Of a stretch of DNA of 64,000 nt, positions 684-54,662 are shown piece after piece. The position numbers and the translations under genes are program-made. The stretch comes from Anolis carolinensis (lineage: Eukaryota): assembly GCF_035594765.1 (NCBI RefSeq), contig NC_085842.1, positions 167,537,036-167,601,035 of the forward strand. The letters run 5' to 3'. The notes below the pieces were generated by a model. That model was not told the DNA's origin. It saw only the letters and a list, made by a program, of their open reading frames with translations, and did not search any database. How positions within the stretch are numbered: position 1 is the first letter of the stretch; each line of letters opens with the position of its first letter.

Positions 684-1629
684 TGTGATGACTCATGGGC
701 CATGTAGTCCTGTTCCTAGCGCTGTTGAGACAGATGAAGAGGAAAACTTGGTTTTTCCACCGTTTCAGCCAGAATCGGAACTTTCCCAGCCAGAATTGGA
801 GCCCTTGCACCTGCAGGAGGTTTGCCTTCCAGAAATCTGCCAAACAAGCCCTGAGTCAGAATCTCCCCCATTTTCTCGCCGTAGTTATTATCAACAACAA
901 AAAGGAGTTCAACAGGCTAATCGCAGAAGCCTGAGAATCGCAGCCAGGCATTCAGCTGATTAAGACTGCTTTCATGAGAACCTTTAGGGAGTCATGCATC
1001 TGGACACAGAGATTGACTTTCGGTTCTGGTTCCCCAGAGAAGTGTTCTTGGTGGGAAAACGAGACCCTATTTAGGCTCCTTGCCCCGTAGGAATCTTGCG
1101 GAGTCAATTCGTCAGCTACCGGAGTAGGTTGTGTGTGGACAGCGCTACTCCCGTTTCCAAGCCTTCGTTCCTGTTTCCAGCCTTGTTTTGCTTCACGGAC
1201 CTTGCCTTGCTACCTAGGACTCAGCCTTGCTTTCCAGGACCTTGCCTTGCTTCCCGGACCTTGCCAAGTATTTACCACGGATCTTGTCCTTGTTCCTCGT
1301 TCCTTGTTGCCTTGAATCAAGCTTTGTGTACCAAGAATCAAGCTATTTCCTTGCCTTGCCTAAGTTTCATGGACTAAAGGACCTTGTCTTCTCCCCTCAC
1401 TTTGCTTGGCAAAGTGAGTGTTTCGGTTACTGGATTACAACTTTGGACCTTACTATTTCATATTGGACATTGTTTTCCTGGACTATATTTGACCTTTCCT
1501 GAAAGGTCATCTTCTGAACTATATTCTACACTTATTTTTATTGCCTTTACTTATTTCCTTAATAAAGATATTAGATAGATTCTGGCCTCTGTGTATGGTT
1601 ATTGGTGCTCTGCAGCCTGGGTCGTGACA
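684..1629 (+). mobile_element. Solo LTR (Gypsy-like), copy A
   Basis: TGTGATG...GTGACA termini, perfect 5-bp TSD AGAAG (679-683, 1630-1634), AATAAA at 1561, homologous to 53753-54620. Confidence 0.9.
688..963 (+). CDS. LTR-encoded 91-aa frame (acidic/Pro-rich, C-terminal RRSLRIAAR); probably a Pol/integrase tail or accessory ORF
   Basis: Frame conserved in the diverged second LTR copy with many synonymous changes and an in-frame 21-bp indel. Confidence 0.55.
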   Translation: MTHGPCSPVPSAVETDEEENLVFPPFQPESELSQPELEPLHLQEVCLPEICQTSPESESPPFSRRSYYQQQKGVQQANRRSLRIAARHSAD

Positions 1630-3210: not shown

Positions 3211-4666
3211 TAGAATCATAGAATCATAGAATAGTAGAGTTGGAAGAGACCACATGGGCCATCCAGTCCAACCCCCTGCTAAGAAGCAGGAAATCGCATT
3301 CAAAGCACCCCCGACAGATGGCCATCCAGCCTCTGCTTAAAAGCCTCCAAGGAAGGAGCCTCCACCACGGCCCCGGGGAGAGAGTTCCACTGTCGAACAG
3401 CTCTCACAGTGAGGAAGTTCTTCCTGATGTTCAGGTGGAATCTCCTTTCCTGTAGTTTGAAGCCATTGTTCCGTGTCCTAGTCTGCAGGGCAGCAGAAAA
3501 CAAGCTTGCTCCCTCTTCCCTATGACTTCCCTTCACATATTTGTACATGGCTATCATGTCTCCTCTCAGCCTTCTCTTCTGCAGGCTAAACATGCCCAGC
3601 TCTTTAAGCCGCTCCTCATAGGGCTTGTTCTCCAGACCCTTAATCATTTTAGTCGCCCTCCTCTGGACGCTTTCCAGCTTGTCAACATCTCCCTTCAACT
3701 GTGGTGCCCAAAATTGGACACAGTATTCCAGGTGTGGTCTGACCAAGGCAGAATAGAGGGGGAGCATAACTTCCCTGGATCTAGACGCTATTCCCCTATT
3801 GATGCAGGCCAGAATCCCATTGGCTTTTTTAGCAGCCGCATCACATTGTTGGCTCATGTTTAACTTGTTGTCCACGAGGACTCCAAGGTCTTTTTCGCAC
3901 ACACTGCTGTCAAGCCAGGCGTCCCCCATTCTGTATCTTTGATTTCCATTTTTTCTGCCGAAGTGAAGTATCTTGCATTTGTCCCTGTTGAACTTCATTT
4001 TGTTAGTTTTGGCCCATCTCTCTAGTCTGTCAAGATCGTTTTGAATTCTGCTCCTGTCTTCTGGAGTGTTAGCTATCCCTCCCAGTTTTGTGTCGTCTGC
4101 AAACTTGATGATCGTGCCTTCTAACCCTTCGTCTAAGTCGTTAATAAAGATGTTGAACAGAACCGGGCCCAGGACGGAGCCCTGCGGCACTCCACTTGTC
4201 ACTTCTTTCCATGATGAAGACGACGCATTGGTGAGCACCCTTTGGGTTCGTTCGCTTAGCCAATTACAGATCCACCTAACCGTAGTTTTGTCTAGCCCAC
4301 ATTTTACTAGTTTGTTTGCCAGAAGGTCGTGGGGGACTTTGTCGAAGGCCTTACTGAAATCCAGGTACGCTACATCCACAGCATTCCCTGTATCGACCCA
4401 ACTCGTAACTCTATCGAAAAAAGAGATCAGATTAGTCTGGCATGACTTGTTTTTGGTAAATCCGTGTTGACTATTAGCAATGACCGCATTTGTTTCTAAG
4501 TGTTCGCAGACCACTTCCTTAATGATCTTTTCCAGAATTTTGCCTGGTATTGATGTGAGGCTGACCGGACGGTAATTGTTTGGGTCGTTCTTTTTTCCCT
4601 TCTTGAAGATAGGGACCACATTCGCCCTCCTCCAATCTGCTGGGACTTCTCCCGTTCTCCAAGAAC
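3211..4666 (-). mobile_element. Young 5'-truncated CR1 LINE (RT domain, intact frame 3300-4619)
   Basis: 439-aa stop-free RT with [10 protein letters not shown] and FADD; (ATTCTATG)n 3' tail at 3211-3232. Confidence 0.95.
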
Positions 4667-5104
4667 GGGTTGTTGGTTTCAGAGGTGCACATTTTGTTCC
4701 TGTATACCTTTTAATGCTAATAATAACTTTATAATAATAACTTTGTTCTTCTACCCCACCACCATCTCTCCGTAAGGGACTCAGGGTGGCTTACATATGG
4801 GCCAAAATGCCCACAAAACACCAATACAAATACAAACAATCCTTCAAGGCAAAAACAGAATTAAAATAAGAACATGATAAAATATAATATATAGCAATCC
4901 AGATAAAACACAATTAAATAAAACTTCAGAGTATAAAATAACAGCATAAAGCTCAATCAAAACAATACTCAACAAACCAATTGCCAGTAGAACATTGGGC
5001 GTGACCAGGCTATAAAAGGGCCGGGCATGGGATAGTGCAAATAGCGTATTGTAGGGCTGGGTATTGGATAAAGTGCAGAGAGCCAAATAATATTAGGGAA
5101 CCTA

Positions 5105-5505
5105 ATATAGCCTAGCTTGTTGTTGACTTAAGCAACCTGAGAGATAGTTGCATCTATCAAGTAGAAAATTTAGGTACTGCTTATGTGAGGAGGCTAATTT
5201 AACTAATTTACAACACCATAAAAATCGTCCAGCAGTATGTGGAAAAATGAGGAAGTAATCTATCAAAGACTCGGTGTCACAGTGGATGATGAAGCAGCAG
5301 CTCCCCCTGTGGCTGGAATCGAGCATGCCCTCATGAAGCCGGAAGCTGGAAAATGTTAAATTGCCTCTGTGTCTCTGTCTCTGACTGTATGTCATATGGC
5401 ATTGAATGTTGGCCATGTATATGTACATTGTGATCTGCCCTGAGTCCCCTTCGGGGTGAGAAGGGCGGAATATACCGTAAATACTGTAAATAAACAAATA
5501 AATAA
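5105..5505 (+). mobile_element. SINE/non-autonomous retroposon with L2-type 3' tail
   Basis: Ends in gccctgagtccccttcggggtgagaagggcgg...(AATA)n; homologous to 53205-53675. Confidence 0.6.
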
Positions 5506-5894
5506 ACTTAGGGACTGAGCATTTATAACTAGGGACTAGGCGTTCTCAAATGCAAGCTGAAACATCCAGGTTTTCAAATCCCTGCAAGAGGACAATGCGA
5601 GGGCTTGCTAAAATACAGCTATCTCTGAATTAATTTTAGAAATCATAAAAATAGTTAATGATTGCAAAACTGATCTGCCAGGCCTTTTAGTTATCTCCTG
5701 AAAGCATAGTACCACTTCTTTTTTCCCCCTGTCTCTTCCCACCTGTGCTACTACTTCCTTTTGATTCTATAGTGCTCACACCTTTTCTTCCCTACTGTCA
5801 TTTTTGGAGAGGCCCTGAAGTGGGTTTCCCAAACGTATTCGGACACCACTAGCATGGGGACGGGGGAGGAGTGTGCCAAGGGACCTACTAACCT

Positions 5895-7047: not shown

Positions 7048-10000
7048 GTGAGAGGCAGTACTTCTTGTTCCTGTTTATATCCTGCTCCTTTTTTCATAAC
7101 TTGGACAATAAAGAATGCTCATACTGCCAAAAGCAGTATTTCCAGGTAGGCTTCTTGGCTTGATCGGAGAATTGCATGTAACAGTAATCCAACTTGTATG
7201 CACAACATTATCAAATCACTGTTCTCCAAAAAATTGAACTGCCTTTAATTCTGTCCTCTGAGAAAGGCGGGATATAAAATAAATATGAAGTTAAGTTGAA
7301 GCTAAGAATACTCTCATTGCCATATCCAGCCAAATGCCTGCATTCGAGAAGTCTCCCAAGATTGATTAATTAATTGTATTTATATACTGCTTTGGCAGGG
7401 ACAGTTCTACCTAATCTGCTGTCCCAATGTTTTCAGCTGCTTTTAAAATTACCTAATTTCTCTTGTCTTCTCCCACCTTATTAGATTATTTTGTTGTTAA
7501 TGGGGTTTACCATGAAACATTAGGTTGCACTAAAAAAAAATCAGCAGGGTGGAGAGAAGGGGACAGAACTTTGTTGCTCTTTCCTGCAGGTTCAGGGAGA
7601 AACAAAGTGCTGCAGTCTCTTAGCCTATATGTTCTTCCTTTTTTATAACTTTTTCATGACCACTTTTTGCTGTTGGTCCACCTGTTCCCATCTGAGAAAT
7701 GCTGGAGGATATAAAGTAGGCACTTGTATATTTCTTCATTTCCGAAGACGTTCATTGCAGGAAGGTCCATATTTCTTGCAAGGTAAGCATCTGGAACATG
7801 GGAACATTTTATATTACGGACTGCACAGAGACAATATTTCATGAAGTCTAAAACTGCATGCAGCATTTTCTTTTTCACAAGAAAAAAAATCCCATCTAGA
7901 GTTCAGTGTGACTTTAAACACCAGTAATTCTTGGCTCTTCACTGGCTTCCATGTTTGTTTATAGAAGTGTTTGATTTATGTTCAGGCCACCAGAAGTTGC
8001 TGAAAGCTCCATCCACTGGCACCGTGTCCTCCTCAGAGGACTGTGAAGACAGGGATCTGATACAAGCCTATGACAATGGTGAGAAGCCAAAGCCAGAATA
8101 ATAAAAAATGAAGAGAGAAGATGGACCTGTAATTACAATCACACCCAGATGGTGCATAGAGAAATCAATATGTCTGTCTGCAGGCATGTTTGCCATCAGG
8201 CCTGATCAGGATAACCCAAACCACCAAACACTGATGCAAAAAATACTTTGATCTCTCCACACTCTTTCTACCATATGTGATTTTTGTCCTTGTTATCTAT
8301 ATAATGTAATTTTTTAACCAATTTCTAGTAATACTTTATTTTTCCTATCACTCACCCCAACATACTAGCCTGGCTTATCCATTAACGTCAGGAACAATGA
8401 ACTCTGAGTTGGAAAACCTAATTTTGATTACCATTATTTGCTATCTGATAATTGTATGTATATGTGCTTTCAAGTCACCTGTCAACTTATAGTGGCCTCA
8501 TACATTTCATAGGGTTTTCTAGGCAAGTCTACAGCACTTGATATTCATTGCCAGTCTTGTATCCAAGTACTAATTAGAGCTGACCCTACTTAGCTTCCAA
8601 GATCAGATGGAATTGGTGCTAGAGACATACAAAATGTCACGAGAAAAGATGAGTTCCTGTAGGAAAATCTTTATACTAAGCAAGCTACTATTTCATTAGA
8701 TGTATTATGTACCGGAGCACCCGGTGGTACAGTGGGTTAAACCCTTGTGACGGCGGGATAGCTGACCTACAGGTCGGCGGTTCAGATGTGTGGAGAGTGG
8801 GTGAGTTCACTCTGTCAGCTCCAGTTCCCCATGTGGGGACACTAGAGAAGCCTCCCACAAGGATGGTTAAACATCAAACATCTGGGCATCCCCTGGGCAA
8901 CGCCCTTGCAGACGGCCAATTCTCTCACACCAGAAGCGACTTGCAGTTTCTCAAGTAGCTCCTGACATGAAAAAATGTATATATACTTGAAGATAGTTTC
9001 CCTTCTTTGTGAGAGTTACAAAATTACAAAATGATCTTAAATCATATTGAATCATATGTCAAATAAACATGAAGCCTTTACTTGATTGGGCTCTCCAGAT
9101 CCAAGCCTATTCACATGAAGTATTTGACAGTTTTTGTTCTTGGAAATCCATCAGAGAACTCGGAGACTGGACCTCTTTGTTTAGCCTTCGATAGTACATC
9201 CAAAGGAAATGACAGAGTAGTCAAGCATGCTTCTATGCTCCTTCATCAGTTCGAAAGACTTCTCAAATGCCTGGCATTGATGTTAAATAACCAAATATTC
9301 TAGAAACTTTCACCCTTTTTTCAGAGCAGGTTATCCTGCTGTATAAGTGTTTATTTCTCATGTTCTTCTGTATGTCTCTCAGTGTTGCCCTACAATACAA
9401 GCATTAATCCTTTCATTACCTGAAAGGGAGCCATTGGGCTGTGATGACACACATCATAGGATGATGACATTATCAGAAGCATTTTAAGACAGATATTAAC
9501 TTTCTTTTAAAAACAATTATGGCTATTGCCCCCAGATTGTTAAATAATCTCAGCAAGATTTTCCTATTTTTTTGTACTTACGTACATAGGTTTGCATCCA
9601 GGTTCTTTAAAAATTTCAGTTTTCTTTCTCTCACAGTCCACAATACATTATATTACATTATACATTCTTTTAAAAATTATGCAATATCTAGACAATTTTT
9701 TTCCTCAGAATACATCAGATGAACACTACACCTCTGAGTAATTGTCACATAAATACAGATATCTGCTAGACAAAGAAAGCTCACATTTGTGGAAAATGTT
9801 AAGTCTGCAACTCCATTTTCCTTGTATGTGGAAGGCTTGGTCATGCAGTCCTGTCACAAATGGAATTGTATTGTCTTAAGGTTATTTCTCCTTCTGCGTT
9901 GTCTATTATTTGCATAGATGCAGTGTCTGAGTTTGAAATGTAATACTAGGCTATTGCCATTTGGCAATCCGCACAAAACCTGATTTTTAAAACAAATTCA

Positions 10001-13000
10001 TGTCAGGAGTGACTTGAGAAACTACAGTTACTTCTGGTGCGAGGGAATTGGCTGTCTGCAAGGACGTTGTCCAGGGGATTGCCCAGATGTTTTGATGTCC
10101 CTGCATGGGGAGCTGAAGCTGACAGAGGGGGCTCATCTGCATTCTCCCCAGATTCGAACCAATAACCTTCAGGCCAGCAACCCAACCTTCAGGGCAGCAA
10201 TCCTGCCAGCACAAGGGTTTAACCCATTGTGCCACTGGGGGTGCTTATAAAACCTGATGTTGAAAACACTGCAAAATTACAAAAGGGCAGCCCAACCTAT
10301 CGTTCCTTCTCTAGCACACAGAAATCATTACAAGACCAACAACACAATGTGTTGTATTTACACCTTTATAATAGAGCGAGTTCCTTCTTTATCTCTTCAG
10401 CTTTCCCATGTGGATCTAAAATCCGTGGATTTCTAATTTTTTTAAGCCCTTGAGTCTGGGCTTTTTTGTGAAGTGGGGAGGAAACTACTTTTGTCTATTC
10501 TCGTTTTTCCTATCCACTTTTGTCTTTCCTTTGTGTGGTTGCGTGTTTAACTATTCATCAGTCTATTAAAAAAAGAAAGATTCTCCTGTCCAATTAATGA
10601 TTAATGGCCACTTGCCTCATCCCCTTTTCAGATCTCAGTGATGTATCGGAAAATGGCTTGCCCCATGGCCTGCTTAAGAACATAAAGCTGTCAAGTGCTG
10701 CTCAGACTCACCGGCTGCGGAAGCTGCGGGGCCCTTCAAAATGCAGGGAGTGTGAGAACTTCATTGTCAGTGGCCTTGAATGCGAAGAGGTGAGTGTAAA
10801 CCTTGCTGCAGCATGCATTTCTGATTTCAAGCAAGCTCTTGTCCTCTGTGCAACATCAGGATGAGCACCTAGGAGCTGGAAAACGGGACACACACACCAA
10901 TGTAAATAGCAAGTAGAGTTGTCAGAATGAAAACTGGAGAAGGCTTCTGTACCTTTAAAGTTTAGAGAAGAGGAGATTTCAACAGAATTATGGTTGTTTC
11001 CTGGTTCTATGATAATGTTGAAACCCCTTCTCCAGCACAACAAATTTTTTTATCATGTCAGAATTGACTTGAGAAAATACTGCAAGTTGTTTCTAGTGAG
11101 AGAATTGTCTGTCTACAGAGATGTTGCCCTGGGGATGCCAGTATGTGTTGCTGGGAGGCTGCTCTCGTGTCCCTGCAAGCTAGAGCTGGCAGATGGGAGC
11201 TCACTCCATCTCGCGAGTTCGAACCGGCAACCCAACCTTCAGGTCAGCAGTTCAGCCAGCACAAGGGTTTAATCTATGAATTTAGCACAATGCCCTGCAT
11301 TAAGGTTGCGTCATCTACTGGCTGAGCCATTAACTCATCCAGTGGTTGAGTACTTTTCAATGAAACTTGATTAACCTTCTGAACTTGAGGAAAATAAAGA
11401 TCCATAAAAGGATTGAATTTGAACTCTGACATTTCGTAAGCTTGGATGTGACTCTAGGAAAAGTGAATGGAGGAACCAACTCTTGACTGAGACAAGGTTT
11501 TATTCAGATCTTGAAATCAGACAGCTCAACAGATAGCCCAACAAACCTGGAGTTTAATTTGTGGCCTGTAATGCAGGATGGCTAGAAACATTTGAGTATC
11601 TTTTGGGAAAGGCAGAATTGCTTTGAGAGCTTGGCTCTTGTGATGTGCACAAAGTATTTGGCAGAGTGCAATATGGTCTCAGGTGCATTGTCCAAAATTG
11701 AAAATGGGATCAGCATCTGTGCCTGAAGCATCTCCAGTTTTTTGGCCCATCTTTCTCCATTTTTGCCAGTCTGTAATGTGGCCTGTCTCCCCACTGCAAT
11801 CTAGCCAAGTGACCAATACTCATCCATAAGAATTCTGTAGAATTGCTAGCCAATAGCGTCTCCTGAAACTGTCTCAGGTGCAAGAAATAATTAGAGATAG
11901 CCTGCAGATGAAGCAATAGGAAGTCATAGCTTCAGGCAGCTGATCCCAGAGTGGTGTCATTATGGTTGGTTTCTCAAAAACATCTGGTTGTCCATTATAG
12001 AAAGGATGTTGGCCTAGATGGATCTTGGACCTGATCCAACAGGGCTTTTCTTATGTTCTGATCTTCAGTTGGCATTTTTGCATCTCTGTTAAAAACTAGG
12101 AATGGAAAAACTGTTTTGACATCGCTCAGATCATCCATGACTCCAAACTGTTCCTTCCCTTCATCCTCCTTTCTTTCCTTTTATTTAGAGCACTGGTTCT
12201 CAACCTGTGGGTCCCCAGATGTTTTGGCCTTCCAGAAATCCTAACAGCTGGTAAACTGGCTGGGATTTCTGGGAGTTGTAGGCCAAAACACCTGGGATTC
12301 ACAGGTAGAGAGCCACTGGTTTAGAGGCTACCTTCCAATGCAAAGAGAGCTATAGTAGCATCCTTCTGCGTGCCATTTCACATGTAGAGGCAGCCCTTAT
12401 TCTTCCACAAGTGAATACGAAACAAGGAGCAACAGCCAATCAGGGGTCTTCAAAGAATGGTTCCATGACAATGATGTGTGGTTCTCATGTACATTACTTC
12501 CTACTTTCAGTTGTATGTTTAAAGTACCTTAGGTACACACTGTAATAAGGCAATAGTTACAGTGTCGAGTGCAGTGGTTTTCACCTTTTGTTTCACCATG
12601 TGTTTTGGACTTACCTCCCTGAAGTTCAAGCCAACAGGAGCAGGGATTCTGGGAGCCATGTCCAAAACATCTGGAGAACCAAAGAATGAGAACCAATAGT
12701 CTAATGAGACATTGCAATGGGTACTGAGAACTGTGTGAGGGTTTGTAAAAGAGGCACCATGATGTGGTGAGTTGACTGGAAAGGCATGTGGCGGCAGCTG
12801 ATTGGCTGAGCCAGTCAGGAGCCAGAATTCCATTGCTGAGGCAAACGGTTTTAACTGCCACTTTCATCTCAGAGAGGGACGAAAATCAGCTGATTGAAAA
12901 TGGTCAGGAAGGAAATGGCTGCCATACTCTCCGAAGCCTGATTATTTATGAGGCAAATGAGGCATATTTAAAGGGACTGTTTATTCCTATATTCTCTGTG

Positions 13001-19735: not shown

Positions 19736-22700
19736 GTACATACAGTAATGGATGTTCATATATATTCACACATATAGCCATACACATGTGCAATTATGTG
19801 TCCACATTCACCTCTATATGTGCTGTCATATATATGCACATAAACATGAAGGAGATCCATGCACACACTCATACATTCACACATGTGTTTATGTGGGGAC
19901 ACTTATTTGTCTAGTCTTGTGGTCTCCAGGTGTTTTGGCCTACAATTCCCAGAAATCCCAACCAGTTTACCAGCTATTAGGATTTCTGGGAGTTGAAGGC
20001 CAAAACATCTGGGGACCCACAGTTGAGAACCACTGGTCTAGTCACAGATAACAAGTCCCAACAAAAGTGTTTTCTTTGTGACTTGGTTTTTAGACCTGTT
20101 GCTGAGATTATTTGGGGCACTGATTCAGAAAATTGCATTCGATAGACTGCATCAGCACTAATTTCTTAGATATGGTTATCATGGTTTTCTATCAGTGAGT
20201 AGATAAGAGTGGTGTACAGCATATGCTCTGTATCTCAAAAATTAGAGCAGATAGGGGGAAAGTGGTACAATTTTTGGAATCAGCAGGTTAAATATACTCA
20301 GAATTAGATCTAACATTTAAGGCACCAAAATGTGTGCTGGCTACTGTAATGCATTGAACAGTGTTTGTGATGAAAGACCAGTTTTGCAACACCTTCCTTT
20401 TCCAATAAACCAAGAACAGCCTTTTAAAAGATTACATTAACAAGTTATTTGACTCCATTAAATAACAAGGTGAACAAGCCTACCAACCCCATTGAAAATG
20501 AAGCATAAACATCTCACATTCATAATGTCGAATCCAGCATTCAAAGCAAAGCAAATATTCAGTGAACATGACTCCCTTAATGTCACTTATTGTCTTTCCC
20601 AGAGTGGCTGAAAGAAATGAAGAGAACAAGATGTCTCCCAACAATCTAGGGATCATCTTTGGCCCAACACTAATCCGCCCTCCTTTTAGCAATGATGTTT
20701 CCATGTCATGTCTGGTGGACTCAGTCTATCAGTCCCAGCTGGTTGAGTTTCTCATCCTCAACTATGAAAGGATCTTTGGTATGGATGACTTGCCTTCGAC
20801 AGGACTTTGTGAACGTGAAAACTCACTGAAAGAAGGAAATGCCAATGATACCCTTTCAAGCAGTGAAAGAGATCTTGATGTCTCTTTTGAGGTAAGAAGG
20901 AAGGACATAGGGAATTCCCAAATACATGGTCTTCGTCATTTGAGCAGTTACTGCCTTTTTTTAATTCCAGATATAGTCGTGTTCTGAAAGGGAAAAGTGG
21001 TATAGCAGGATTGTGAAAAAACAAGATTCTGTTGGAGCAGCTCAAGTCAAAGGGAATGTCAGACTACGGCAGGACAGCTTGGTATAGAGAGTTAGGGAAA
21101 TGTCCATACTGTGTTAAAATCCTATGGAGCAAGGACTTCGCTCTAGTACAGTGATGTCAAACTTGCACCCCTTCCAGTGTTTTGTACTTCAGATCCCAGA
21201 ATTCCTGGCCACTTGATAGGCTGGATAGGTCTTCTGCAAGATTGAGACTCAAACATCTGGAGGGCAATAAGTTTGATACTTCTGCTCTATTGATTTAGCA
21301 GCTATCTCTGTACCTTCTCAGCAGCAGCAATTAGCAAAGAAGCAGCCAATTTTGGTTAAGCAACAAGCTCTCAAGCCAACAACCAGAAGTCAGAGCTCTG
21401 GGAGCATAGCAGCTTATCTGCATACTTTTCCAGCAGCCTTTGCTTCTGAAGGCCCTGCGAGCAAAGAGGAAGCTGGGTTTAGAGAGGCTACAAGGTTTCA
21501 AACCAGTAAACCAGGAGGTGGAGTTTTGGGAGTATAGCAACCAACCTGTAGTATTTCCCAACAGCCTTTGTTGAAAACATAGCCAGGAACATATCTGGGG
21601 GATCTAAGGAACTTCAATTGGTTACGGGTAGTTTGGAGGTAAATGGCGAACTATTTCACATATAGAACTACTACGCTAAGCTGAGCCATAGTATTGCAGT
21701 GTTAGGATTGCTCATAGTCAAGGCTGATGGTACTAACTAGGCTATGTGGATCTTTTGTTGAATTCAGTATAGCTGAAGGATAAACCCCAGTAAAGGAATA
21801 ATTTGCTTGAATCACACACACACTATGATTTGCTACTCTATAAATACAGGGACATGGGTTTTGTAATGGCAAGAGCATTCAAAATTGTCATCTACTGATT
21901 GAGCTATGGAATACAATAATTGAAATAAAATACTTTGTAAATGGTTGAGGAATCTGTTTTGAAAATGTCAGGAAATCATGTTGAGAATCTTAGATGGGCA
22001 AAAACATGAGTTTGATTTGTACCAAAAAATTAATGTGTTTTATGGGTACAAAAATGCTATTTTTGGTGCAGAAAAACTGCTTTTCTATTCAGAAAATTGT
22101 TTTTTTGCACAGAAATATTAATTTTAGCATACAATAGGTCATTTTCTACATTGGAATTGCCATTTTCAGCACCAAAAATGGATTTGTTTTTGTATAAATT
22201 AAGTCACAAACTGTTTTTATTTTTAATTATTTACACATTATTAGTGAGCTAGGGGATTTAAAAAAATATTTTTCAAACCTTTCTTTAAGTTAATTCAAAT
22301 TTTGTCTTTTCCAAACCATATGAAAGAAGCCACACATTACAAAAGCAATATCAAGTAGGAATAATGGCTTTGAATTTTTGTGATCTATGTGAATGTTTCT
22401 ATGGGGAACATTTTTATGAATCTAGTTTGGGTAATTTTTAATGCTAAGAGATTATTTATGCCACTTGGATTTTAAAAAATGAAATGAAATACATGCATAC
22501 ACACATCAGCCCTGAGTGCCATAAAAAACAGGATTAATTTTTATTCTTGTTTCCTTTGCTTTTAGTTTTCTTGTAGTGATCATACTTTCATAAAACCGCT
22601 AGGAAAGATAAATGCACTAATTCACAGGCATGGCTTTTTCCAACAGAAAAATTCTTCCAAGTCGTGTCTGGATGAAGAAGAAGATGTGGCTGAAGATTGT

Positions 22701-23906
22701 TCTAACACTGCGGACAGGCAGGGGAAAAACAAGGAGGAAACACACTGCTCTGAAAATAGAGACACCGTAGGTAATTTCTCCCTCTCTGTATAGAGCAGTG
22801 GTTCTCAACCTGTGGGTCCCCAGGTGTTTTGGCCTACAACTCCTAGAAATCCCAGCCAGTTTACCAGCTGTTAGGATTTCTGGGAGTTGAAGGCCAAAAC
22901 ATCTGGGGACCCACAGGTTGAGAACCACTTTTATAGACCAATCATTGAAGGAAAATGGTCTGCAATTATGGGGAGAATGTGTTGTATTGAGTAAGTTCAA
23001 AACAGCAGCTTACTGCATCTTGCCTACCCACCTGAAAACACAATGAACATCCTAGTACAGCTAAAACATCTTCTCTTTATAACCTTAGGCAATGCTATTG
23101 CTCTCTAGACACATGGAATAGATTTTCCACATTACATTCTTCTTCATTGTTATCCTTAACTAAAAATTTGTCTGATTGTTTCAGTTGGTGCATCAGTCCT
23201 TCCTTCTGGGTATTTAATATACATTAATGTTTTTAAAAAGTCCTTAAAATTAGGATTATATTGATTTTAGGTTTAACACTGCTTGTGTTCAGCAGTTCCT
23301 AATAGGAAGGAGAGAGGCAGAGATAAAATATTGATACTCTTCTTTTGCACGTAGGATGGTAGGTTCATGACAGCTCACATTCAGTGTATTCTACAAAAAA
23401 AAAACTACTAAAAAGCACAGGAAAACAGCAGGGGGAAAAACACTATGCTGCCACATTACCCTGGAAACACTGGAGTCTGTCTGATATCACAAACTAAGCT
23501 AAGGTCAACACTTAGAACTGATTGCAGAAATGGATCAGCTCTAGTAGAGCTATAAAAGAAAATGTATACACTCCCAAATACCGGGTCTTTAGAGGCTGTT
23601 AAAAATAAAAAGAACAATATGCAGGCTGAATACCCCTAACCCCAATGATCTCTACCCCTTTATCTAAGTTAGAGGAGCACCTGGTGGCACAATGGGTTAA
23701 ACCCTTGTGCTGGCAGCACTGCTGACCGAAAGGTCGGCAATTCAAATCTGGGGAGCTCCTGTCTGTCAGCTCCAACTTCTCTTGCGGGAACATGAGAGAA
23801 GCCTCCCACAGGATGGTGAAACATCCAGGCGTCCCCTGGACAACATCCTTGCAGACAGCCAATTCTCTCACACCAGAAGCGACTTGGAGTTTCTCAAATC
23901 TCTCCT

Positions 23907-23944
<38 letters not shown>

Positions 23945-25417
23945 TCTAAGCTAGGCCTTCACAACCTGTGTCTGCCTAGGTGTTTGGGATTCCCAACTCC
24001 CAGAAGCCCTAGCCAGCTTGTCCAGTGATCAGGAATTTTGGAAGCTGAAGTCCAAAACACCTGGAGGGCTACCGGTTGTACAGGCTTGCTCTAAGTTATT
24101 GATCTAATGTTGAAGAGTAATGGTCCTAGTACAGAACCTCTGAGAAACTACTTGAGCCCTCCAACTAATTGCGGATCAATCTGACAGAGTTATCATCTAT
24201 TTCACATTTTGCTAATCAAAACATTATGGGAGACCCTGATAAATGCTTTGATGAAACCCAGAGAAATGACATCCACGTCATTCCTGCAAAACCATTACCT
24301 TCCTCGAAGTCTGAGAGAGAGTGACTTGCACAAGGTAACCCAGTGAGTTTCAATGGCTGAGCAGGGATTTGAATCCTTGCCAGCAGAGTCCAAGTTCAGC
24401 ATCCAGACCACTACACCATGATGGCCCATAATGGCTCAGTCTTCAGTAGCTAACCAGTTTCACTTCTCTTGTCATTCTTAGAGAGAGAGAAATCTTTGCT
24501 CCCTAGAAATATAGATTCTTAAAGGGAAAAAAGTGTGGGAAAGGATGGTGGGCTGAGTCCTATACTATTTAAAAGATGAATACCTGTCTGGGAAATACCA
24601 AGAGAAGGAGCGAAACCTTTTTTTGCCACTCTTTGACAAATACAGTAGAGTCTCATTTATCCAACATAAATTGGCCGGCAGAACATTGGATAAGCAAAAA
24701 TGTTGGATAATAAGGAGGGATTAAGGAAAACCCTATTAAATGTCAATTACGTTATGATTTTACAAATTAAGCACCAAAGCATCATGTGTTACAAGTCTGC
24801 CACTTGTTTGGGAGTGTGGCTGCACTTGTGTTGTTGTTGGGCGTGTTGGCTTGCTGTGCATTGCTGCCCAGAGAAACAGTTGTGGATCTAGGCAGGAGGT
24901 AGGCTGCAATGGATAATACAGAATGTTGGATAAGTGAGACTCTACTGTATAGCCTTTCTTCTTTTTTTAGGTAGGCAGCATAATAAATTAAATGCAGTGT
25001 CTCATTCTCCAATTCTCTCTGTTTCTTCTTCCCATTCACTCAGAGGTAAACAGCAGAGACAGCACTGAACCAAAGGATTCTCTTCTTGACCCAGATCCTG
25101 AGATTGGCCCGCAGTCCAGGGGCCGCTTCAGCCGGGTGCCTGTGAAACATCCTCGTGCCATCATCCCCAAGGCAGCCACCTTGCCCCTGCCCACCGCTTC
25201 CCTCTCTAGCTCAGAAGCAGGAGGGGCAAGCAGACGCAGTGCCTCACCTGACCCCCGTGGGAAATGCAAGCGCTTTGAGATCACCCCAGAGACTGCCAGG
25301 ATCGTCTCCAAGCTCCAGCCTCTTCGGAGTAGTCCAGACTGCTATCCAGCTGAGCTGGGGAACTCACTGCAAGGCAAGCTGGGGGATTCACTTGTAGGAA
25401 GCCAGGCTGAATTTTGA
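6961..25417 (+). CDS. GMIP: GMIP (GEM-interacting protein, C1 + RhoGAP), 3' part of gene. Joined exons 6961-7047, 7986-8078, 10632-10789, 13914-14102, 15596-15733, 18850-19046, 20603-20891, 22647-22770, 25044-25417
   Basis: All nine exons have AG/GT boundaries and compatible phases. The translation gives a C1 domain (THRLRKLRGPSKCRECE...CHKKC), a RhoGAP domain with the GIYR arginine finger and NKMSPNNLGIIFGPTL, and GMIP-type tail motifs (QSRGRFSRVPVKHPR, FEITPETAR) matching my recollection of mammalian GMIP rather than ARHGAP29/45. Confidence 0.93.
7986..8078 (+). CDS. GMIP: GMIP coding exon (HQKLLKAPSTGTVSSSEDCEDRDLIQAYDN)
   Basis: ttcag acceptor, g|gtgaga donor, 93 nt, phase 1-1; KAxSTGTxSS motif of the family. 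Confidence 0.88.
8714..8975 (+). mobile_element. Anolis tRNA-derived SINE (AnolisSINE2-like)
   Basis: ggagcacccggtggtacagtgggttaaacc head, gagaagcctcccacaaggatgg core, ctcctgaca(A)n tail. Confidence 0.85.
9998..10244 (-). mobile_element. Anolis tRNA-derived SINE
   Basis: Reverse complement of the same SINE family. Confidence 0.85.
10632..10789 (+). CDS. GMIP: GMIP exon, N-terminal half of C1 domain
   Basis: ccttttcag acceptor, gag|gtgagt donor; LSSAAQTHRLRKLRGPSKCRECENFIVSGLECEE. Confidence 0.95.
11044..11271 (-). mobile_element. Anolis tRNA-derived SINE
   Basis: Reverse complement of the same family. Confidence 0.8.
12191..12318. mobile_element. hAT MITE
   Basis: TIRs with 8-bp TSD-like atttagag/gtttagag. 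Confidence 0.8.
13158..13495. mobile_element. Tc1/pogo-type non-autonomous DNA transposon
   Basis: tatactcgagt(g/a)taagcc / ggcttatactcgagtata inverted termini. Confidence 0.65.
13632..13768. mobile_element. hAT MITE
   Basis: cagtggttctcaacc...ggttgagaaccactg. Confidence 0.85.
13914..14102 (+). CDS. GMIP: GMIP exon, end of C1 and start of RhoGAP
   Basis: ttgcag acceptor, cag|gtaacc donor, 189 nt; CLLACHKKCLENLLINCGHQKLPARASLFGIDF...VPFIVVKCTSEIEARALGVQ. Confidence 0.95.
15596..15733 (+). CDS. GMIP: GMIP RhoGAP exon with arginine finger
   Basis: tacag acceptor, gag|gtaagg donor, 138 nt; GIYRISGSKARVERLCQAFENG...HDITGVLKHFLKE. Confidence 0.95.
16330..17190 (+). mobile_element. L2 LINE 3' fragment
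   Basis: VVHALVTSRLDYCNTLYMGLP...LHWLPV motifs, (AAAT)n tail. Confidence 0.8.
17420..17705 (+). mobile_element. Old BovB/RTE 3' fragment
   Basis: LETIIILGKVLGSRKRGRASYRWLD. Confidence 0.7.
17985..18350 (+). mobile_element. Old CR1 3' fragment
   Basis: [19 protein letters not shown] remnant. Confidence 0.7.
18850..19046 (+). CDS. GMIP: GMIP RhoGAP exon
   Basis: caacag acceptor, ag|gtaatg donor; LTSPVLPFKLYDAFI...LPATNYNTLRHLIAHLYR. Confidence 0.95.
19595..19734 (+). repeat. (TAA)n microsatellite interrupted by a ~50-bp Dong/R4 3' terminus (19641-19690)
   Basis: atccagcatatctatcttgtttgctgtgtcata matches the reverse complement of 34843-34875. Confidence 0.75.
20603..20891 (+). CDS. GMIP: GMIP RhoGAP C-terminal exon
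   Basis: tttcccag acceptor, gag|gtaaga donor; VAERNEENKMSPNNLGIIFGPTLIRPP...LVEFLILNYERIFG. Confidence 0.95.
22647..22770 (+). CDS. GMIP: GMIP penultimate exon (KNSSKSCLDEEEDVAEDCSN...); alternative in-frame acceptor at 22566
   Basis: ctaat branch-like site plus ttttccaacag acceptor, tag|gtaatt donor; phase 0 to 1 bridges the flanking exons. Confidence 0.75.
22796..22928. mobile_element. hAT MITE
   Basis: TIRs; lies 25 bp after an exon donor. Confidence 0.85.
23674..23943 (+). mobile_element. Anolis SINE with (CA)n tail
   Basis: Family head and core; TSD-like tctaag(t/c)ta. Confidence 0.85.
24643..24947. mobile_element. Tc1/pogo-like MITE (CAGTAGAGTCTCACTTATCCAAC TIR)
   Basis: TIRs flanked by TA; same family at 46827-47260, 48591-51159, 58411-58720. 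Confidence 0.85.
25044..25417 (+). CDS. GMIP: GMIP terminal coding exon
   Basis: Long polypyrimidine tract plus cag acceptor, phase 1; QSRGRFSRVPVKHPR and FEITPETARIVSKL motifs; TGA at 25415-25417. Confidence 0.9.
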
Positions 25418-26876
25418 GTAGTGAGTCCTTCCATTTTTGGAAGCAAACTGTGGACTAGAGAGATAGAAACATCCCAATTCCTGGAGACAGTTTGGAATAG
25501 CAAGCTCATCATTCTGCAAAAACAGGATACAGGAGTCCACATCTCTCTACGGGCCAGACAATTACACTTGCAAATTTGAGGAGAATTAGCCCCGGGTGCA
25601 TCTTGCATGTCTTCCAAGAGAGAAGGCAGAACAATTCTTCCTCCAGGTTTAACTGCTGCATGTCGGCTGGCTGAATTTGCAGAGCTATCCCTAATGAAGT
25701 GAATGAACCAGTGTTGAAATGGTGGGACCCTATAAACTCCAAACCCAATGATCCAGGTTGATGCTTCTGGGACTCTCTTTCCAAGGGACTGATGAGGTAG
25801 CTCAGCACTCCTGTTAGGATGGAAGATTGCTGATGGGAAAGGAACAGAAATCACATAAAAGGGGTGATGTGCCAATGATGCTGTTAGCAAGATATGACTA
25901 TTTTTTCTAAGACCTATGTTGATACAAGACATTCGAGGTGGGGTGGGGCTGCTGGGATCAGGGAGTTAACTATTCATGTAGGACATGATGATTCATATGC
26001 ATTTTTCAAGCTGGGCTTGGTGTGTTTAGAAAGGATGGTGTGGCTGTGTTGCTGGGAGTACACAAACTTGATTGTATGTATCCTGCATTTAGAAATATCA
26101 ATTGACTTTATCACACGAGGCTGTTTAATTGCAGTTACAACAGGATAGTAGCATGTTTGGCATGTTCTTATCAGATTATGTTGTGCCTCTCCTGTTGCTC
26201 TTTGCATTTCAATCAATAGTGGAGCATCAGTTTTCACTGATGGGGCAAACCCATCAATAACTCCCAATATCCCGCATTTTCCAATACCATCCCTTCTGCT
26301 ACAGTTGTGATATTCCAACAGTCACATGGCATGAGTGGACATGATTCTCCTCCTCTTCCCCTCTTCTTCTCACTATTCCCAAGCAGGGTAAGATTGCTTT
26401 TCCTATTTTATAATTTAAAAAAAACTTATAATCAGTAATTGCACAATTGCAGAAAAAAAAATTAAAATTGAAAGTTGCATATGCACTGGTAGGGTTCACA
26501 GGGGCAGGAAGATAGGGCATCCAGGGGCAGGTGACAAACATTGCGAAAGGAACACCATAGCATGATCACAGAAGGGTGTGATAGTGATTGTTTCATTATG
26601 CTTCTGATTGCTTCAAGAAAACAATTGCTGTGATACATCAGGCTTGTGTGATAAAGTCAAATGTGTCAAGAAAGGTGGATCCTTTGCATTGTATATTCTG
26701 TGCAAAACAAACATATTTTCAGATCTCTTTTCCTTTTCTGAACTTGTTGTTATTGTCCATCATTTGTTCTACTCAGGCTATTCACTATGAAAAAATAAGC
26801 TTTAGATACAAATCCAACCCCACTTGAATCCCTGAAAGTCTTATTACCATACTTTTGGGGCATTGTGAATTTTAAT

Positions 26877-27921: not shown

Positions 27922-28192
27922 GGAGCCCTCGGTGGCCTAGGGGATAAAAGCCTTGTGACTTGAAGGTTGGGTTGCTGACCTGAAGGCTGCCAGGTTCGAA
28001 TCCCACCCGGGGAGAGCGCGGATGAGCTCCCTCTATCAGCTCCAGCTCCATGCAGGGACATGAGAGAAGCCTCCCACAAGGATGGTAAAACATCAAAAAC
28101 ATCTGGGCGTCCCCTGGGCAACGTCCTTGCAGACGGCCAATTCTCTCACTCCAGAAGCAACTCAGGTTGCTCATGACATGAAAAAAAAAAAA
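27922..28192 (+). mobile_element. Anolis SINE, near full length
   Basis: Head, B-box ggttcgaatcc, A tail, TSD-like tgcccca. Confidence 0.9.
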
Positions 28193-30187
28193 CCATGCCC
28201 CAGACTAGGTTGCAATGGGGTTGAGCACCTGAAATGACCTTGTAACAACATGGGGCCATTAAATGCTGCAGAATTCAGAGAGGCGCGAATGGAGGGCTTA
28301 AGGGAGAAACATGCCAAGAAGGCATTTCAAGCCACCTCTGACCAGGGCCACCTTCCACCTGGAAACCGATGCCCTCACTGTGGAAGAATATGTGGGTCAA
28401 GGATAGGGCCCCACAGCCACCTACCTAGCACCAGGACACTACACCTGGAAGATGATCACACTCGGACAATGAGGGATTGCCTAAGTGAAAGCGATTACAT
28501 GTTCAATTGCTAACAAATAATATGACAGCTGTTGTCATTGAGTCTTTCCAAGAAAATATCCTGCACATTCTTACTTCAGTATAAGCTCCATTGAAGACAT
28601 GGAGGGAATTTTCTGTGTATACACTGTGCTTGTCAGACTCTTCATGTTTACAGATGCATGAATGGTACCAGATGGGAATAGTCACTTGCCTTCCTCCTGC
28701 AAATAAATAAAATTAATAACAATGCCCACACCCCAGTTTTGAAAATAATTATGGCTCCCTACCCCAATGGTTGGCAGTCCACTTCTGGTTTTGAAAGACA
28801 GGCATTACCAAAAGGTAGGTTAAGTGCTCCTGGAAGCTCCCAGGAGACAATGTGCATCCTGTTTTTCGTTTCTTTCCTGACCATAGAAAGAGTGATTAGG
28901 ATGGGCAAGTCATGAATTGTAATAACAGTATCTTGGGGCCAAACATGAGCATCGTGCTGCCATCTCCCCATCCCTACTTTATGAACACCTACTAAGAGTT
29001 GCAATATCTTATATGCTTCCATGTACTAAGGGACATTTGTGCTTTCATAATGTAAAGAGGCTCCTGCTACATATTTCCTAAACAGAAATGCTGTCAGGGT
29101 GGAAAATCCAGTCTAAGTGAAGTAGCTCTCACTCAAATGTTGATGGAAATATTATAGATTATTCTGATACAGTCTTCTGACTGTTGGAGGATATGGCATC
29201 TCATTGCATGTCATAAGTCGACAAGTAATAAATACTATGGCATTGGTGAATTCCTCAGTATCTTGGCCAACAACATGGTTTCCATAATTTATTGTTTGGC
29301 CACCATATACATGCCTCTCGGGGCTATAGAGGAGCCTTCTCAGACCTGACATTATGCAGATGTGTTACACCTCAACTCCCATCATTGCAGTCAACATGGC
29401 TGTACTTACTTGGGAGGATGGATCTTGTAGTCTAACACATCTGGAGAGCATCAGGTTGGGGAATATGGCTGAAGAATCCATTCTTGAACGGGAACTGGTG
29501 CAGATTCAGAGGACTTTTGAAAATGAAGGGGAGGGTACATCCAAGTATTTTCCTTTCTTCCAGAATCTCCCTAACCATCTCCACATTCCACACTCATTGG
29601 CTCCTTGTCAAGGCAAAAGATCAGTAGAAATTCCTTCCAAGAGCAATGGTACAATAAATGAATTTACAGAAAGAATCAGGGGTAGAGGAAGCCCAGTGAA
29701 CTCAGCCTTTTGTCCCCGATCCCTCTAACAGAAGAACATGTGTTTAATATTGATATTTTGCTTACGATTAAATTATGATTTTGTCACTTGGTTTCCTGCT
29801 TGAAGTTATTGAATTGCCTATAATTTACTATAGTTCAACCTCACCAACAGGGCAAATTAGTTTTTTGCCACAGGTGACAGGCTCAGTTCTTGGTACTCTT
29901 ATTTCTTTCACTTCTGGCCTGGTCATGTTCCCTGCTCTCAAAGAAGGAGGGCTTAGCACAGGACTGGGGATCACCTTGCTCTCCAGAAGTCATTCAACTG
30001 CAGATCCAAGAATCCCTCACTATTGTCCAAGGCTGGGGGAAGTTGCAATCCAGCAAGCTTTTGAAGGCTACACAGTTCTCATCTCTGAATTAGTATGGGC
30101 GTGGTAGTGTAAGGAAAGTCACTTAGTGGTTCTCAATCATTTTACAAAACATTTCAATTGCCAGACAGATTAGGATCATGCTTTGTT

Positions 30188-30250
30188 TACTATACTATAC
30201 TATACTATACTATACTATACTATACTATACTATACTATACTATACTATAC
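30188..30250 (+). repeat. (TATAC)n microsatellite
   Basis: Direct reading. Confidence 0.95.
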
Positions 30251-32054
30251 CTTTCTCCCAAAACTGACATCCAAGGCAACCAATTATCTTTATACCTAAA
30301 TCATTATCCAGCACTCTTTTTTCAGACATGTAAGTGTACACATATCCTAGAGATGGCAAACATATGGTCTTCCAAATGTTGGTGATTACTGTTCTGCCTA
30401 ATATTTTGGCGAAGCAATGTGAGCATAATGAAAGTAGAATATAAAAATATTTGGAGGGTCTACCTTAGTCTCAAAATGGCTTTGTCCACTTATAGAAGTG
30501 GTAGGATCCAAGCAGCATAAGCAGTGTTTCTCTCCCTTAGAATAACTTGCACTGAGAATTTTAGTGACATGGGAAGAAAATCTGTCCTGGAGTCTTGGCG
30601 TATGTGGAAAGGGGGGGGGGGGGGGAAACAAGAGTGCTTTGAATGTTTTTCTGTCATTTTATTTAACCTCCCAGCAGGAGAAGTCTACTGATGGGAATGT
30701 CAAATGCCAAAAGTATTATATTTCTCAAACTATGTGGAGAAATTGCAGAAAAGCAGATAAGTAAACGATAATACTTATTGGGCTCTCAGCAGAATGTTAC
30801 AAACTACAGTACATCCCAGGGGGCCTCCCCGTAATGGTGTCAAGAAGGAGAAGATGCTGTTTGGGCCTTCTTTGACTCTAAGACAAAACAAAGACTTTCA
30901 CCCCACAGCCATGCAGAGCCAGAATCAAGGGCATTGAAGAAACAGACAGGAAATAGGACCATGTGGGGGTCTCCTGAAGGGTGTTTGGATACCAAAAGAA
31001 AGCAAAATGCACTTGGAAAAAACCTGAAATAAATGCTCTCACCCTTCGTGGGGCTTAAATGTCTTACAGGCTTCAGAACCTGTCAGCTTTTTGAATTTAA
31101 GCAAAGTCAGTCCTAGTTAGTACCTGGACAGGAGACAGACAATGAATACCAGGTGCTGTAAGCTATATTGCGGAGAAAGGAACTGGCAAAACCACCTTGA
31201 CAGGCATCTTGAAGGCACGCACACATGCTTCATTTAATAGCCAGTTGACAAGTAAGTGTCTCTGTAGCAAACAACAGCCCAGGAAAGGTGGAACATAGCT
31301 CTTTGGTTTGTACTGAAGTATCAGTACAATGAGGGTTGGAATAGTTAGACTTCACCTGCCCCGAGGCTTAGTTGTTCATTTGTAAAAGGTTGACCCTAAA
31401 ACTTTATGTTGTCTGAGGCACAGGATAAGCGAAATCTGCAAAAACCCCCCCAACACACACACACACACAACAGCAGGTGACTTTCATGTCAGAGAGGTGG
31501 TGAATCTTGAATGCAGACTGAGATCATGACACCAGGGGATTGAGAAGGCATCTTGTACATTTACAGCTTACTCTGCCACCTGTCCAGGCAATTGCTTGTA
31601 TTGCCAGATTCTTTATACCTTTCTTAAATGAGGTATCTAGATCTGATTTCTGTACTCCAGATAAGATATCACTAGTGCAGAATATATTGGAACTATTACT
31701 TCTTTTTGGAGTCAATATAATGTAGTGGTCTGAGAGCTGGACTAGGCCACTGGAGACCTGGGATTGAATCCCCACTTGCCCACAGGAACCCCCGGGTGAC
31801 TTTCAGCAAGTCATGGCTTCAGAGGAAGGCAAAAGCAAACATCTTCTGAAGAAATCTTGCCAAGAAATTCCTGTAATAGGTTTGCCTTAGGATCGCCGTA
31901 AGTCAGAAACGATCTGAATGCACACAACAATTTATTCTCTAGTATTGGAAACTCCCGTTCTAATGTCTTATGCTATTTTTGGAAAAAGAAAGATCAGATG
32001 TTGCCATTCATTTTATAGTCATTCATTTATTACCCTGTAATTTGCAATAATGTT

Positions 32055-52090: not shown

Positions 52091-52589
52091 AAAGTTTTAG
52101 AAGCACCTCAACTCAATTCTTGGCATTTTTTTTACAAAGCAGCCACAATTAGATAAATGGTAATTTGTTGCCTATTTCATGATATGGTAGAATCTCAGCT
52201 AAGTGGCACACATGGAGGTTGGCAGAGATCAATGAAATAGTAACAGGGTGGAAATATTCCACAGCATTGAGACATGGGAGTGCTCTGGTTTTTTGAATTA
52301 GTTTTAATGTTTTTTAACTGGAAAATCTTTAATACTATTTATATTTAATCCTGTTTTAATGTTCATATATTCGTATATTTTAAATGTCTATGCTGATGTT
52401 TTTATGTTAAGTAGCTTTGAGTCCCCTTCAGAGGAGATAAAGCAGGGTATAAATAAATATAAAAACATGTTGGATAAATGTAGCTTCTGTATACTTGAGA
52501 GTCAGGTGCTATCATTTCTATTAAAAATCAGCCTAATACTAGATAACATATATGTCAACCTCAAGTCCTGTAGGCCAAATCTGGCCTAC

Positions 52590-53115
52590 CATGTCATTTA
52601 CATGGAGCCGCTGAGAAAAATCATCCACAGGCATGGGTCAGGGTATTATCAGTATTCTGATGACACCCAGATACATTTCTCCATGCCTTCCAAAACAGCC
52701 TCTGCTAAGAATAATGTGCCTTCTCCGAATGAATGCCTGGAGGAGGTAATGGGCTGGATGAGGAAAAACAAATTTAAACTGAATCCAGACAAGTCAGAGG
52801 AGTGTGTCATCAAGGGTACTAATCTGGGGATGGAGGTGTGTCATCCGGTTCTGGATGGGGTTACAATCCCCTTGAAAGACTATGCTCGCAGCTTGGGAAT
52901 GCTCCTGGATCCATCACTCCAAATGTCAGCCCAGGTAGATGAAACGATCCGGAGTGCTTGCTACTAGCTTCATCCCTTCTTATATTTGGAAGACCTGAAG
53001 ATGGTAGTGCATGTGCTGGTAACCTCATGGTTGGCCTTCTGCAATGTGCTTTACATTGGGCTACCCTTGTATCAAGTTTGGAAACTCCATCTGGTTCAAA
53101 ATACGGCAGCCAGGT
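52590..53115 (+). mobile_element. L2 LINE RT fragment
   Basis: YHQYADDTQ-like (YYQYSDDTQ), CLEEVMGWMRKNKFKLNPDKSE. Confidence 0.8.
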
Positions 53116-53675: not shown

Positions 53676-53752
53676 GAATGCCACCTAACAATACTTCTAG
53701 CTGACCTTTTGCCAGCACCTCATGCTCTGGGAAGTCCATCCAGCTGTCTTCC

Positions 53753-54620: not shown

Positions 54621-54662
54621 CTTCCTGGGCTTCATCTACAAATGAAGGACTCAATCACACAT

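Follow-up and report, generated by a model that had tools for sequence, protein, structure and literature searches.

An integrase tail read into the long terminal repeat of an Anolis chromovirus ends in a candidate acidic-patch anchor

[quoted passage not shown] An arginine anchor on the H2A-H2B acidic patch is used both by the chromatin-binding sequence of foamy virus Gag and by LANA of Kaposi's sarcoma-associated herpesvirus (KSHV). LANA is also cited in the structural report on HMGN and Dsup (PMC12487698). Among the centromeric chromoviruses of plants (CRM clade), group A elements have a polyprotein frame that extends through the polypurine tract (PPT) into the 3' LTR (PMC3059260). Here we analyze a 64,000-nucleotide stretch of the genome of the lizard Anolis carolinensis (contig NC_085842.1, positions 167,537,036 to 167,601,035 of the forward strand; the whole stretch is called the window), which contains two solo LTRs of a chromovirus family. 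Each of them carries, at the beginning of its U3 region, an open frame which is almost certainly the tail of the integrase, read through the PPT into U3, and which terminates in a short arginine motif closely resembling known acidic-patch binders.

Both LTRs had been recognized in the initial annotation of the window as independent insertions, flanked by different target site duplications (TSDs), AGAAG and CTTCC, and this is confirmed. The features on which the following description relies are:

684-1629, forward strand: solo LTR c1, 946 bp, TGTGATG...GTGACA
679-683 (left) and 1630-1634 (right), forward strand: TSD of c1, AGAAG, five identical bases
53753-54620, reverse strand: solo LTR c2, 868 bp, TGTGATG...GTGACA
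53748-53752 and 54621-54625: TSD of c2, CTTCC on the forward strand, GGAAG on the element strand
688-963, forward strand: relic of an integrase C-terminal tail in c1, 91 codons plus TAA, an open frame with protein matches
54362-54616, reverse strand: relic of an integrase tail in c2, 84 codons plus TAA, 92% identical to the tail of protein P0006
778-798, forward strand: in-frame insertion of 21 nt (7 codons, ELSQPEL) that repeats 757-777 in tandem
862-873, forward strand: SPPF block, read as TCT CCC CCA TTT / TCT CCC CCG TTC / TCA CCT CCC TTC in three DNA copies
922-948, forward strand: HMGN-like motif of c1, RRSLRIAAR, tail residues 79-87
54377-54403, reverse strand: HMGN-like motif of c2, RRSARIAAR, tail residues 72-80

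The two LTRs are 74% identical and are the sole copies of their family in the window. Since no internal element sequence adjoins either of them and their TSDs match, both are solo LTRs, the remnants of LTR-LTR recombination. Their frames, of 91 and 84 amino acids as first reported, are open from LTR base 5 and end at a homologous TAA. The approximately 13 synonymous differences initially counted by hand correspond to exactly 13 codons, including AGA/CGA, TTG/CTG, GGA/GGC and GCA/GCT; the 21-bp duplication is indeed the only indel of the frame, and the blocks HGPCSPVPSA, EPLHLQ, SPPFSRR and ANRRS(L/A)RIAAR are all present. The ELSQPEL insertion is a subfamily trait, common to c1 and to proteins P0001, P0019 and P0020, and the SPPF block shows only synonymous changes among c1, c2 and a third DNA copy, L001, described below. 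In themselves, the frames of c1 and c2 are inert relics, neither independent genes nor expressed modules.

Ten A. carolinensis proteins feature an integrase core, an SH3 domain, a chromodomain and a linker, followed by the LTR-encoded tail. The run from chromodomain to tail is found in P0005, P0006, P0008, P0009, P0010, P0019, P0020 and P0021 (UniRef, A. carolinensis); P0005 and P0006 were retrieved by searching for longer proteins sharing the tail of P0002, and the others through clusters and further search. The linker is basic and proline-rich, ends in ...G(L/G)(E/G)xGDSV and continues unbroken into M(T/S/P)HGPCSP..., the stop being located after ...IAA(K/R)xxx(D/N). The Pfam domains Integrase_H2C2, rve, SH3_Tf2-1 and Chromo score above cut-offs in P0005, P0019, P0020 and P0021, the window itself containing solo LTRs only, and clusters of tail-bearing proteins at 90% identity contain 4, 33, 9 and 17 members. 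The c1 tail matches that of P0020 at 89% identity and that of P0019 at 79%; P0006, whose tail matches the c2 one, comprises SH3 domain, chromodomain and tail. A single gag-protease-reverse transcriptase-RNase H-integrase frame is found in the family in P0018. All three aromatic cage positions (F, W, F) are present in the chromodomain, as in the type I chromodomain, which is defined by them (PMC3059260). The TG...CA ends of the LTRs, the 5-bp TSDs and an integrase with HHCC and DDE domains followed by a chromodomain identify the family as a chromovirus; its initial assignment to a lizard Gypsy family was therefore right, and can be made more precise.

The same continuity is seen at the DNA level in L001 (GCA_035594765.1, CM069370.1:101043734-101077067, the locus of NCBI gene model P0031), a full-length member of a sister subfamily. 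Its LTRs, at 4938-5843 and 10336-11241, align without gaps with 11 differences in 906 bp, its TSD is CTTAA, and its PPT, at 10310-10335, ends in ...GGGGGGGGATAG immediately before TGTGATG. An unbroken frame, from 9755 to 10585, encodes the SH3 and Chromo domains (Pfam), crosses the PPT and proceeds for 82 codons into the 3' LTR; upstream of it pol is broken by frame changes and by a stop at 9752-9754. A similar arrangement is found in the amphisbaenian Rhineura floridana (L002; GCA_030035675.1, CM057605.1), where a single-exon gene, 8001-8843, passes through the PPT and enters an LTR beginning at 8579 and repeated at 3638-4210; the LTR-encoded tail (8579-8843) is acidic and terminates in ...KRGRPVSLRPKR. 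In both L001 and L002, pol is in frame with the LTR open frame across the PPT. The initial annotation had left two origins for the frame, an integrase tail read through the PPT into U3 or a separate U3 accessory peptide: the ten proteins and the 9755-10585 frame of L001 demonstrate the former.

A separate accessory gene, starting from the ATG at positions 5-7 of the LTR and comparable to sag in mouse mammary tumour virus (MMTV) or nef in HIV, would account for the ATG that occupies the same site in every Anolis copy as well as in the Rhineura LTR (TGTCATG), and in one gene model, P0007, the opening 26 codons of the LTR frame are indeed fused to gag. Such a gene is hardly credible, however, the frame being continuous with integrase: no stop lies between the chromodomain and the ATG in any full-length copy seen, and the U3 of the 5' LTR is absent from the element's own transcript. 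Furthermore, the first LTR bases read xxT GTG ATG in the integrase frame, so that the ATG encodes an internal Met and is not a start codon. It belongs to the TG..ATG end of chromoviruses, and TGATG, the motif usually found at the termini of chromovirus LTRs (PMC3059260), explains it with no need for a role in initiation.

Purifying selection on the frame had been proposed on the basis of c1 and c2, and these two copies are only suggestive in this respect. The ratio of non-synonymous to synonymous substitution rates (dN/dS, NG86 method) is 0.49, compared with 0.57-1.27 in the other five frames, a weak and non-significant difference when taken alone. Differences are distributed as 18/14/22 over the three codon positions (chi-square P = 0.32); 55/84 amino acids are identical, where random placement of the same substitutions yields 50.2 ± 2.8 (P = 0.06); the probability of encountering no stop together with an identity at least as high is 0.015.

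The proposal becomes strong only once L001, which brings the still small sample to three independent DNA copies, is added. Since its tail diverges by 39-41% at the nucleotide level from c1 and c2, the power of the tests is raised. Differences by codon position become 31/28/44 (P = 0.028) and 29/22/46 (P = 0.0004) in the comparisons of L001 with c1 and c2, with ratios of the proportions of non-synonymous and synonymous differences (pN/pS) of 0.52 and 0.38. In the integrase frame, amino-acid identities of 37/82 and 44/82 contrast with 25.1 ± 3.0 and 28.1 ± 3.0 in permuted sequences, and none of 3000 permutations reaches the observed values; the other frames are null in this test, save for an antisense frame with shared wobble positions. 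In the frame-blind nucleotide alignment of the three copies only gaps of 21 and 6 nt are found, all multiples of 3, while only one of the nine gap runs observed between c1 and c2 in the rest of the LTR (1, 2, 2, 1, 1, 30, 23, 11 and 4 nt) is such a multiple. Within the terminal motif every fixed residue of RRSxRIAA varies synonymously among c1, c2 and L001, on codons CGC/CGC/CGG, AGA/CGA/AGG, AGC/AGC/AGT, AGA/AGA/CGA, ATC/ATC/ATT and GCA/GCT/GCT. The tails of the 5' and 3' LTRs of L001, whose divergence dates only from the insertion, are separated by two non-synonymous changes and a synonymous one, as expected for neutral decay. The tail, and the motif in particular, is very probably under purifying selection as a protein.

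Alternatively, the tail might have no function as a protein, pol simply continuing to whichever stop comes first in U3, with the conserved blocks reflecting constraints on DNA, such as the LTR end bound by integrase or enhancer sites. Consistent with this are the lack of significance of the c1/c2 comparison, the presence in both LTRs of two further long-open frames, a second sense one and an antisense one, and the fact that the tail region is no better conserved between c1 and c2 at the nucleotide level than the remaining LTR, the best-conserved part being R/U5. The excess of changes at the third codon position in an alignment blind to frame (P = 0.0004), an amino-acid identity 4-5 standard deviations above permutations in the integrase frame only, the confinement of frame indels to multiples of 3 and the use of varied codons for conserved residues make this explanation highly improbable.

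The 13 available tails can be grouped into five types, all sharing an acidic first part (net charge from -6 to -13), fast-evolving and rich in Pro, Ser, Glu and Gln, and a basic end, the last 28 residues having a net charge of +3 to +6. The composition of the tail is of low complexity (P/S/E/Q-rich) with no Pfam domain, and the tail may well be disordered. No match was obtained when the c1 and c2 tails were compared with Pfam, or the last 47 residues with PDB sequences, both at E up to 10. Intact-looking tails read RRSARIAA(K/R) or RRSLRIAA(K/R), five residues before the stop, the former version being found in c2, L001, P0001, P0006 and P0021 and the latter in c1. Although the middle parts of their LTRs can no longer be aligned by blastn, five tail types retain the motif, and the intact-looking tails conform to the R-R-S-x-R core, with arginines 1, 2 and 5, and to the accompanying L/I, S/A, A/T pattern.

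The RRSAR segment of HMGN2 and the RRSSR segment of Dsup have been located on the H2A-H2B acidic patch by cryo-EM, the last Arg acting as anchor and the Ser being hydrogen-bonded (PMC12487698). The yeast Dot5 protein contains RRSARIAT, and its binding to nucleosomes in vitro requires R6, R7 and R10 as well as an intact acidic patch (PMC13347269). As judged from the sequences, the likeness of the lizard tail to HMGN is a short-motif resemblance, neither homology nor HMGN membership. We give slightly better than even odds to the idea that the lizard motif binds the acidic patch, and infer from the analogy with these proteins that the tail would serve in tethering.

The tail may be real and selected, and its basic motif still have another role, as a nuclear localization signal (NLS), a contact for DNA or RNA, a partner of the acidic part or a dock for a host factor. 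The succession of an acidic stretch and a basic end fits this possibility, and related squamate tails keep the acidic-then-basic layout without RRSxR, terminating in ...KRGRPVSLRPKR in Rhineura and in an Arg/Lys/Gln run in Crotalus, so that the shared trait may be charge and not a specific anchor. A comparable case is Ty1, where the C-terminal basic NLS of integrase is reported to double as a targeting domain. On the other hand, R, R, S, R, I, A and A are exact in five Anolis tail types despite synonymous turnover, and the 8-mer is identical at seven positions out of eight to a proven acidic-patch binder. Another role for the motif is, on balance, unlikely, though far from negligible.

Besides the weakness of the c1/c2 comparison, several observations weigh against a selected, patch-binding tail. 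As to selection, the protein copies are gene models, open by construction, and the DNA copies free of this bias are limited to c1, c2 and the two LTRs of L001. P0024 is devoid of the distal tail, its first ~30 tail codons being joined to the 156-residue frame of the R region described below for c2, so that the distal part is passed over in certain copies or models. Amino-acid divergence is 12-31% in the tail and 5-10% in SH3 domain and chromodomain, the tail evolving 2-3 times faster, a behavior commonly shown by disordered regions that contain short functional islands. The first ~30 nt of the LTR are the terminus which integrase must recognize, and the conservation of M-HGPCSPVPS may in part be a constraint at the DNA level. 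As to the motif, decayed copies exist, such as RRSLS in P0002, RRNLR in P0005 and RQSLR in P0020, and position 4 is Leu in about half of the tails, while Ala or Ser is found there in HMGN, Dsup and Dot5. The stop, five residues past the motif, leaves no room for the Lys-rich DNA-contacting stretch of HMGN. By a rough estimate, about one such 9-mer is expected by chance in a six-frame translation of a 2-Gb genome. The AlphaFold2 model of P0006, obtained from a 5-row alignment, is unusable (predicted local distance difference test score, pLDDT, 37), and shows a weak helix over the last 27 residues; AlphaFold 3 is reported to misplace HMGN2 itself on the nucleosome (PMC12487698).

All considered, we assign a probability of roughly 0.6 to the reading in which a selected integrase tail, encoded in U3, carries an acidic-patch anchor motif. 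Its architecture and reading frame are shown: the first 255-280 bases of the family U3 have a dual role, constituting, in the 3' LTR, the end of the single gag-pol frame. The integrase is composed, in order, of an HHCC zinc domain, a DDE core, an SH3-like domain, a chromodomain, the basic Pro-rich linker, a PPT-encoded part and 82-96 U3 codons, and the tail can be translated because the genomic RNA includes U3 at its 3' end. The chromodomain would read a mark on the histone H3 tail, and the terminal motif would act as a short linear anchor, inserting its Arg side chains, like those of HMGN, Dsup and Dot5, into the H2A-H2B acidic patch. The anchor might engage the same nucleosome or a neighboring one, and motif and chromodomain together would hold the intasome for strand transfer.

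The tail of L002 has an RGRP core which resembles an AT-hook, and the slot may be filled by different anchors, for chromatin or for DNA, in different squamate lineages. A broader view, which we put forward as tentative, is that in squamate chromoviruses the LTR-encoded end of integrase is an exchangeable slot for peptides copying the anchors of host chromatin proteins, of the HMGN type in Anolis and AT-hook-like (KRGRP) in Rhineura, giving the intasome, together with the chromodomain, a two-point hold on the nucleosome. The Crotalus adamanteus protein P0027, named PEG10 at its source, contains a chromoviral integrase core, an SH3 domain, a chromodomain and a long acidic tail with a basic end; it is not PEG10-like, and the source name looks wrong.

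Comparison of the 91-residue tail with the protein library detected, along with an unrelated repeat protein, three chimeric gene models, P0001, P0002 and P0003, which include a solo LTR as an exon. In P0002 the LTR tail lies behind a reverse transcriptase of a long interspersed nuclear element (LINE), in P0003 it precedes a C19orf12-like domain, and in P0001 it is part of a spliced model of 174 kb; these, and P0007, where 26 codons of the LTR frame are followed by gag-protease, are probably annotation artefacts. A homologous-protein search with the 91-residue tail alone produced no candidate, and an exact-pattern scan of metagenome and viral contigs for a 29-nt block shared by c1 and c2 gave no match.

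The remaining signals of the LTRs are located as follows:

1068-1075, forward strand: TATA-like sequence of c1, TATTTAGG
54256-54249, reverse strand: TATA-like box of c2, TATATAGC
1561-1566, forward strand, in c1 (R/U5), and 53821-53816, reverse strand, in c2: AATAAA

Because of the positions of the TATA-like box and of AATAAA, the U3 of c1 is taken to end near ~1100, the open frame corresponding to its distal 280 bases. The R region contains tandem repeats, of period 20 at 1188-1260 and of period 7 at 1283-1314, with a matching part in c2; they explain most of the difference in length between the two LTRs (gaps of 30, 23 and 11 nt). In c2, a frame of 156 amino acids is open in the R region (53880-54350, reverse strand).

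c1 is inserted into a purine-rich (GAA)n/(AGAAGGAGG)n microsatellite, at 613-672, owing to which its LTR frame is accidentally open upstream to 529. The open reading frame (ORF) preceding c1, in the 482-676 region, terminates in a zinc-finger-like CPHCGRTCGARIGLYNHLCIH and is probably the end of a LINE ORF2. The possibility that c1 is a 3' LTR joined to an internal stub, suggested by the purine-rich flank and its EGG-like translation, was rejected, as this flank consists of a (GAA/GGA)n microsatellite that follows the end of a LINE ORF, and a TSD of 5 bp agrees with a solo LTR. Other retroelement remnants of the window, unrelated to the LTR family of c1 and c2, are an ORF of 439 amino acids at 3300-4619, reverse strand (RVT_1, E = 1e-35), and one of 202 amino acids at 52359-52967, forward strand (RVT_1, E = 5e-07). 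Two decayed Gypsy-like elements are found within the L001 locus, at 22400-26200 and 28100-30950, sharing 38-48% identity with P0018 and about 77-80% with each other, with a chromodomain remnant in one of them at 30713-30928; decay has gone too far for their pol end to be readable.

The family described here is a vertebrate element combining a chromodomain with a second candidate histone contact, a selected motif of 8 residues nearly identical to acidic-patch binders. The authors of the HMGN and Dsup structures predicted 'an untapped realm' of such proteins (PMC12487698), among which a transposon integrase would come as a surprise. In the literature searched, no paper ties a retrotransposon integrase to an arginine anchor or to an HMGN-like motif; if correct, the broader view of an exchangeable slot would bring to light an HMGN-like motif in a mobile element for the first time, and likewise the first LTR-retrotransposon integrase proposed to contact the histone acidic patch directly. 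The coding nature of the 5' third of U3 in these LTRs also bears on LTR annotation, and on the dating of solo LTRs, because not all of their sites have been neutral along active lineages; gene models are affected as well, several in A. carolinensis having absorbed the tail as an exon.

Among known systems, the CR motif of CRM group A elements is, like the lizard tail, an LTR-encoded putative targeting domain of integrase, in elements whose LTRs start with TG(..)ATG (PMC3059260). The CR motif, however, replaces the chromodomain, while the lizard family keeps a complete chromodomain and adds the tail after it; the two share no sequence similarity, and the lizard host is a vertebrate. At the level of the motif, RRSARIAA is identical to Dot5 RRSARIAT at 7 positions out of 8 and to HMGN RRSARLSA at 6 out of 8, with Arg 1, 2 and 5 and Ser 3 in common. 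As in HMGN, Dot5 and tardigrade Dsup (RRSSRLTS), it is short and located in a low-complexity region beside an acidic stretch. Beyond the motif there is no homology with HMGN, Dsup or Dot5, and the lizard sequence, the extreme C-terminus of a transposon integrase, is a candidate binder only.

The MLV integrase tail, foamy virus Gag and KSHV LANA exemplify what is proposed for the lizard tail, a short disordered terminal peptide holding a genome on chromatin. They differ from it in several respects: foamy viruses carry the anchor on Gag rather than on integrase, the MLV tail recognizes a reader protein (BET) instead of the histone surface, and none of the three is encoded by an LTR. Targeting by chromodomains, as in MAGGY and Tf1, concerns the same class of elements and the same C-terminal position in integrase. 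Known chromoviruses, however, are described as ending at the chromodomain or just after it, whereas the lizard family adds, downstream, a second candidate contact with the histone surface.

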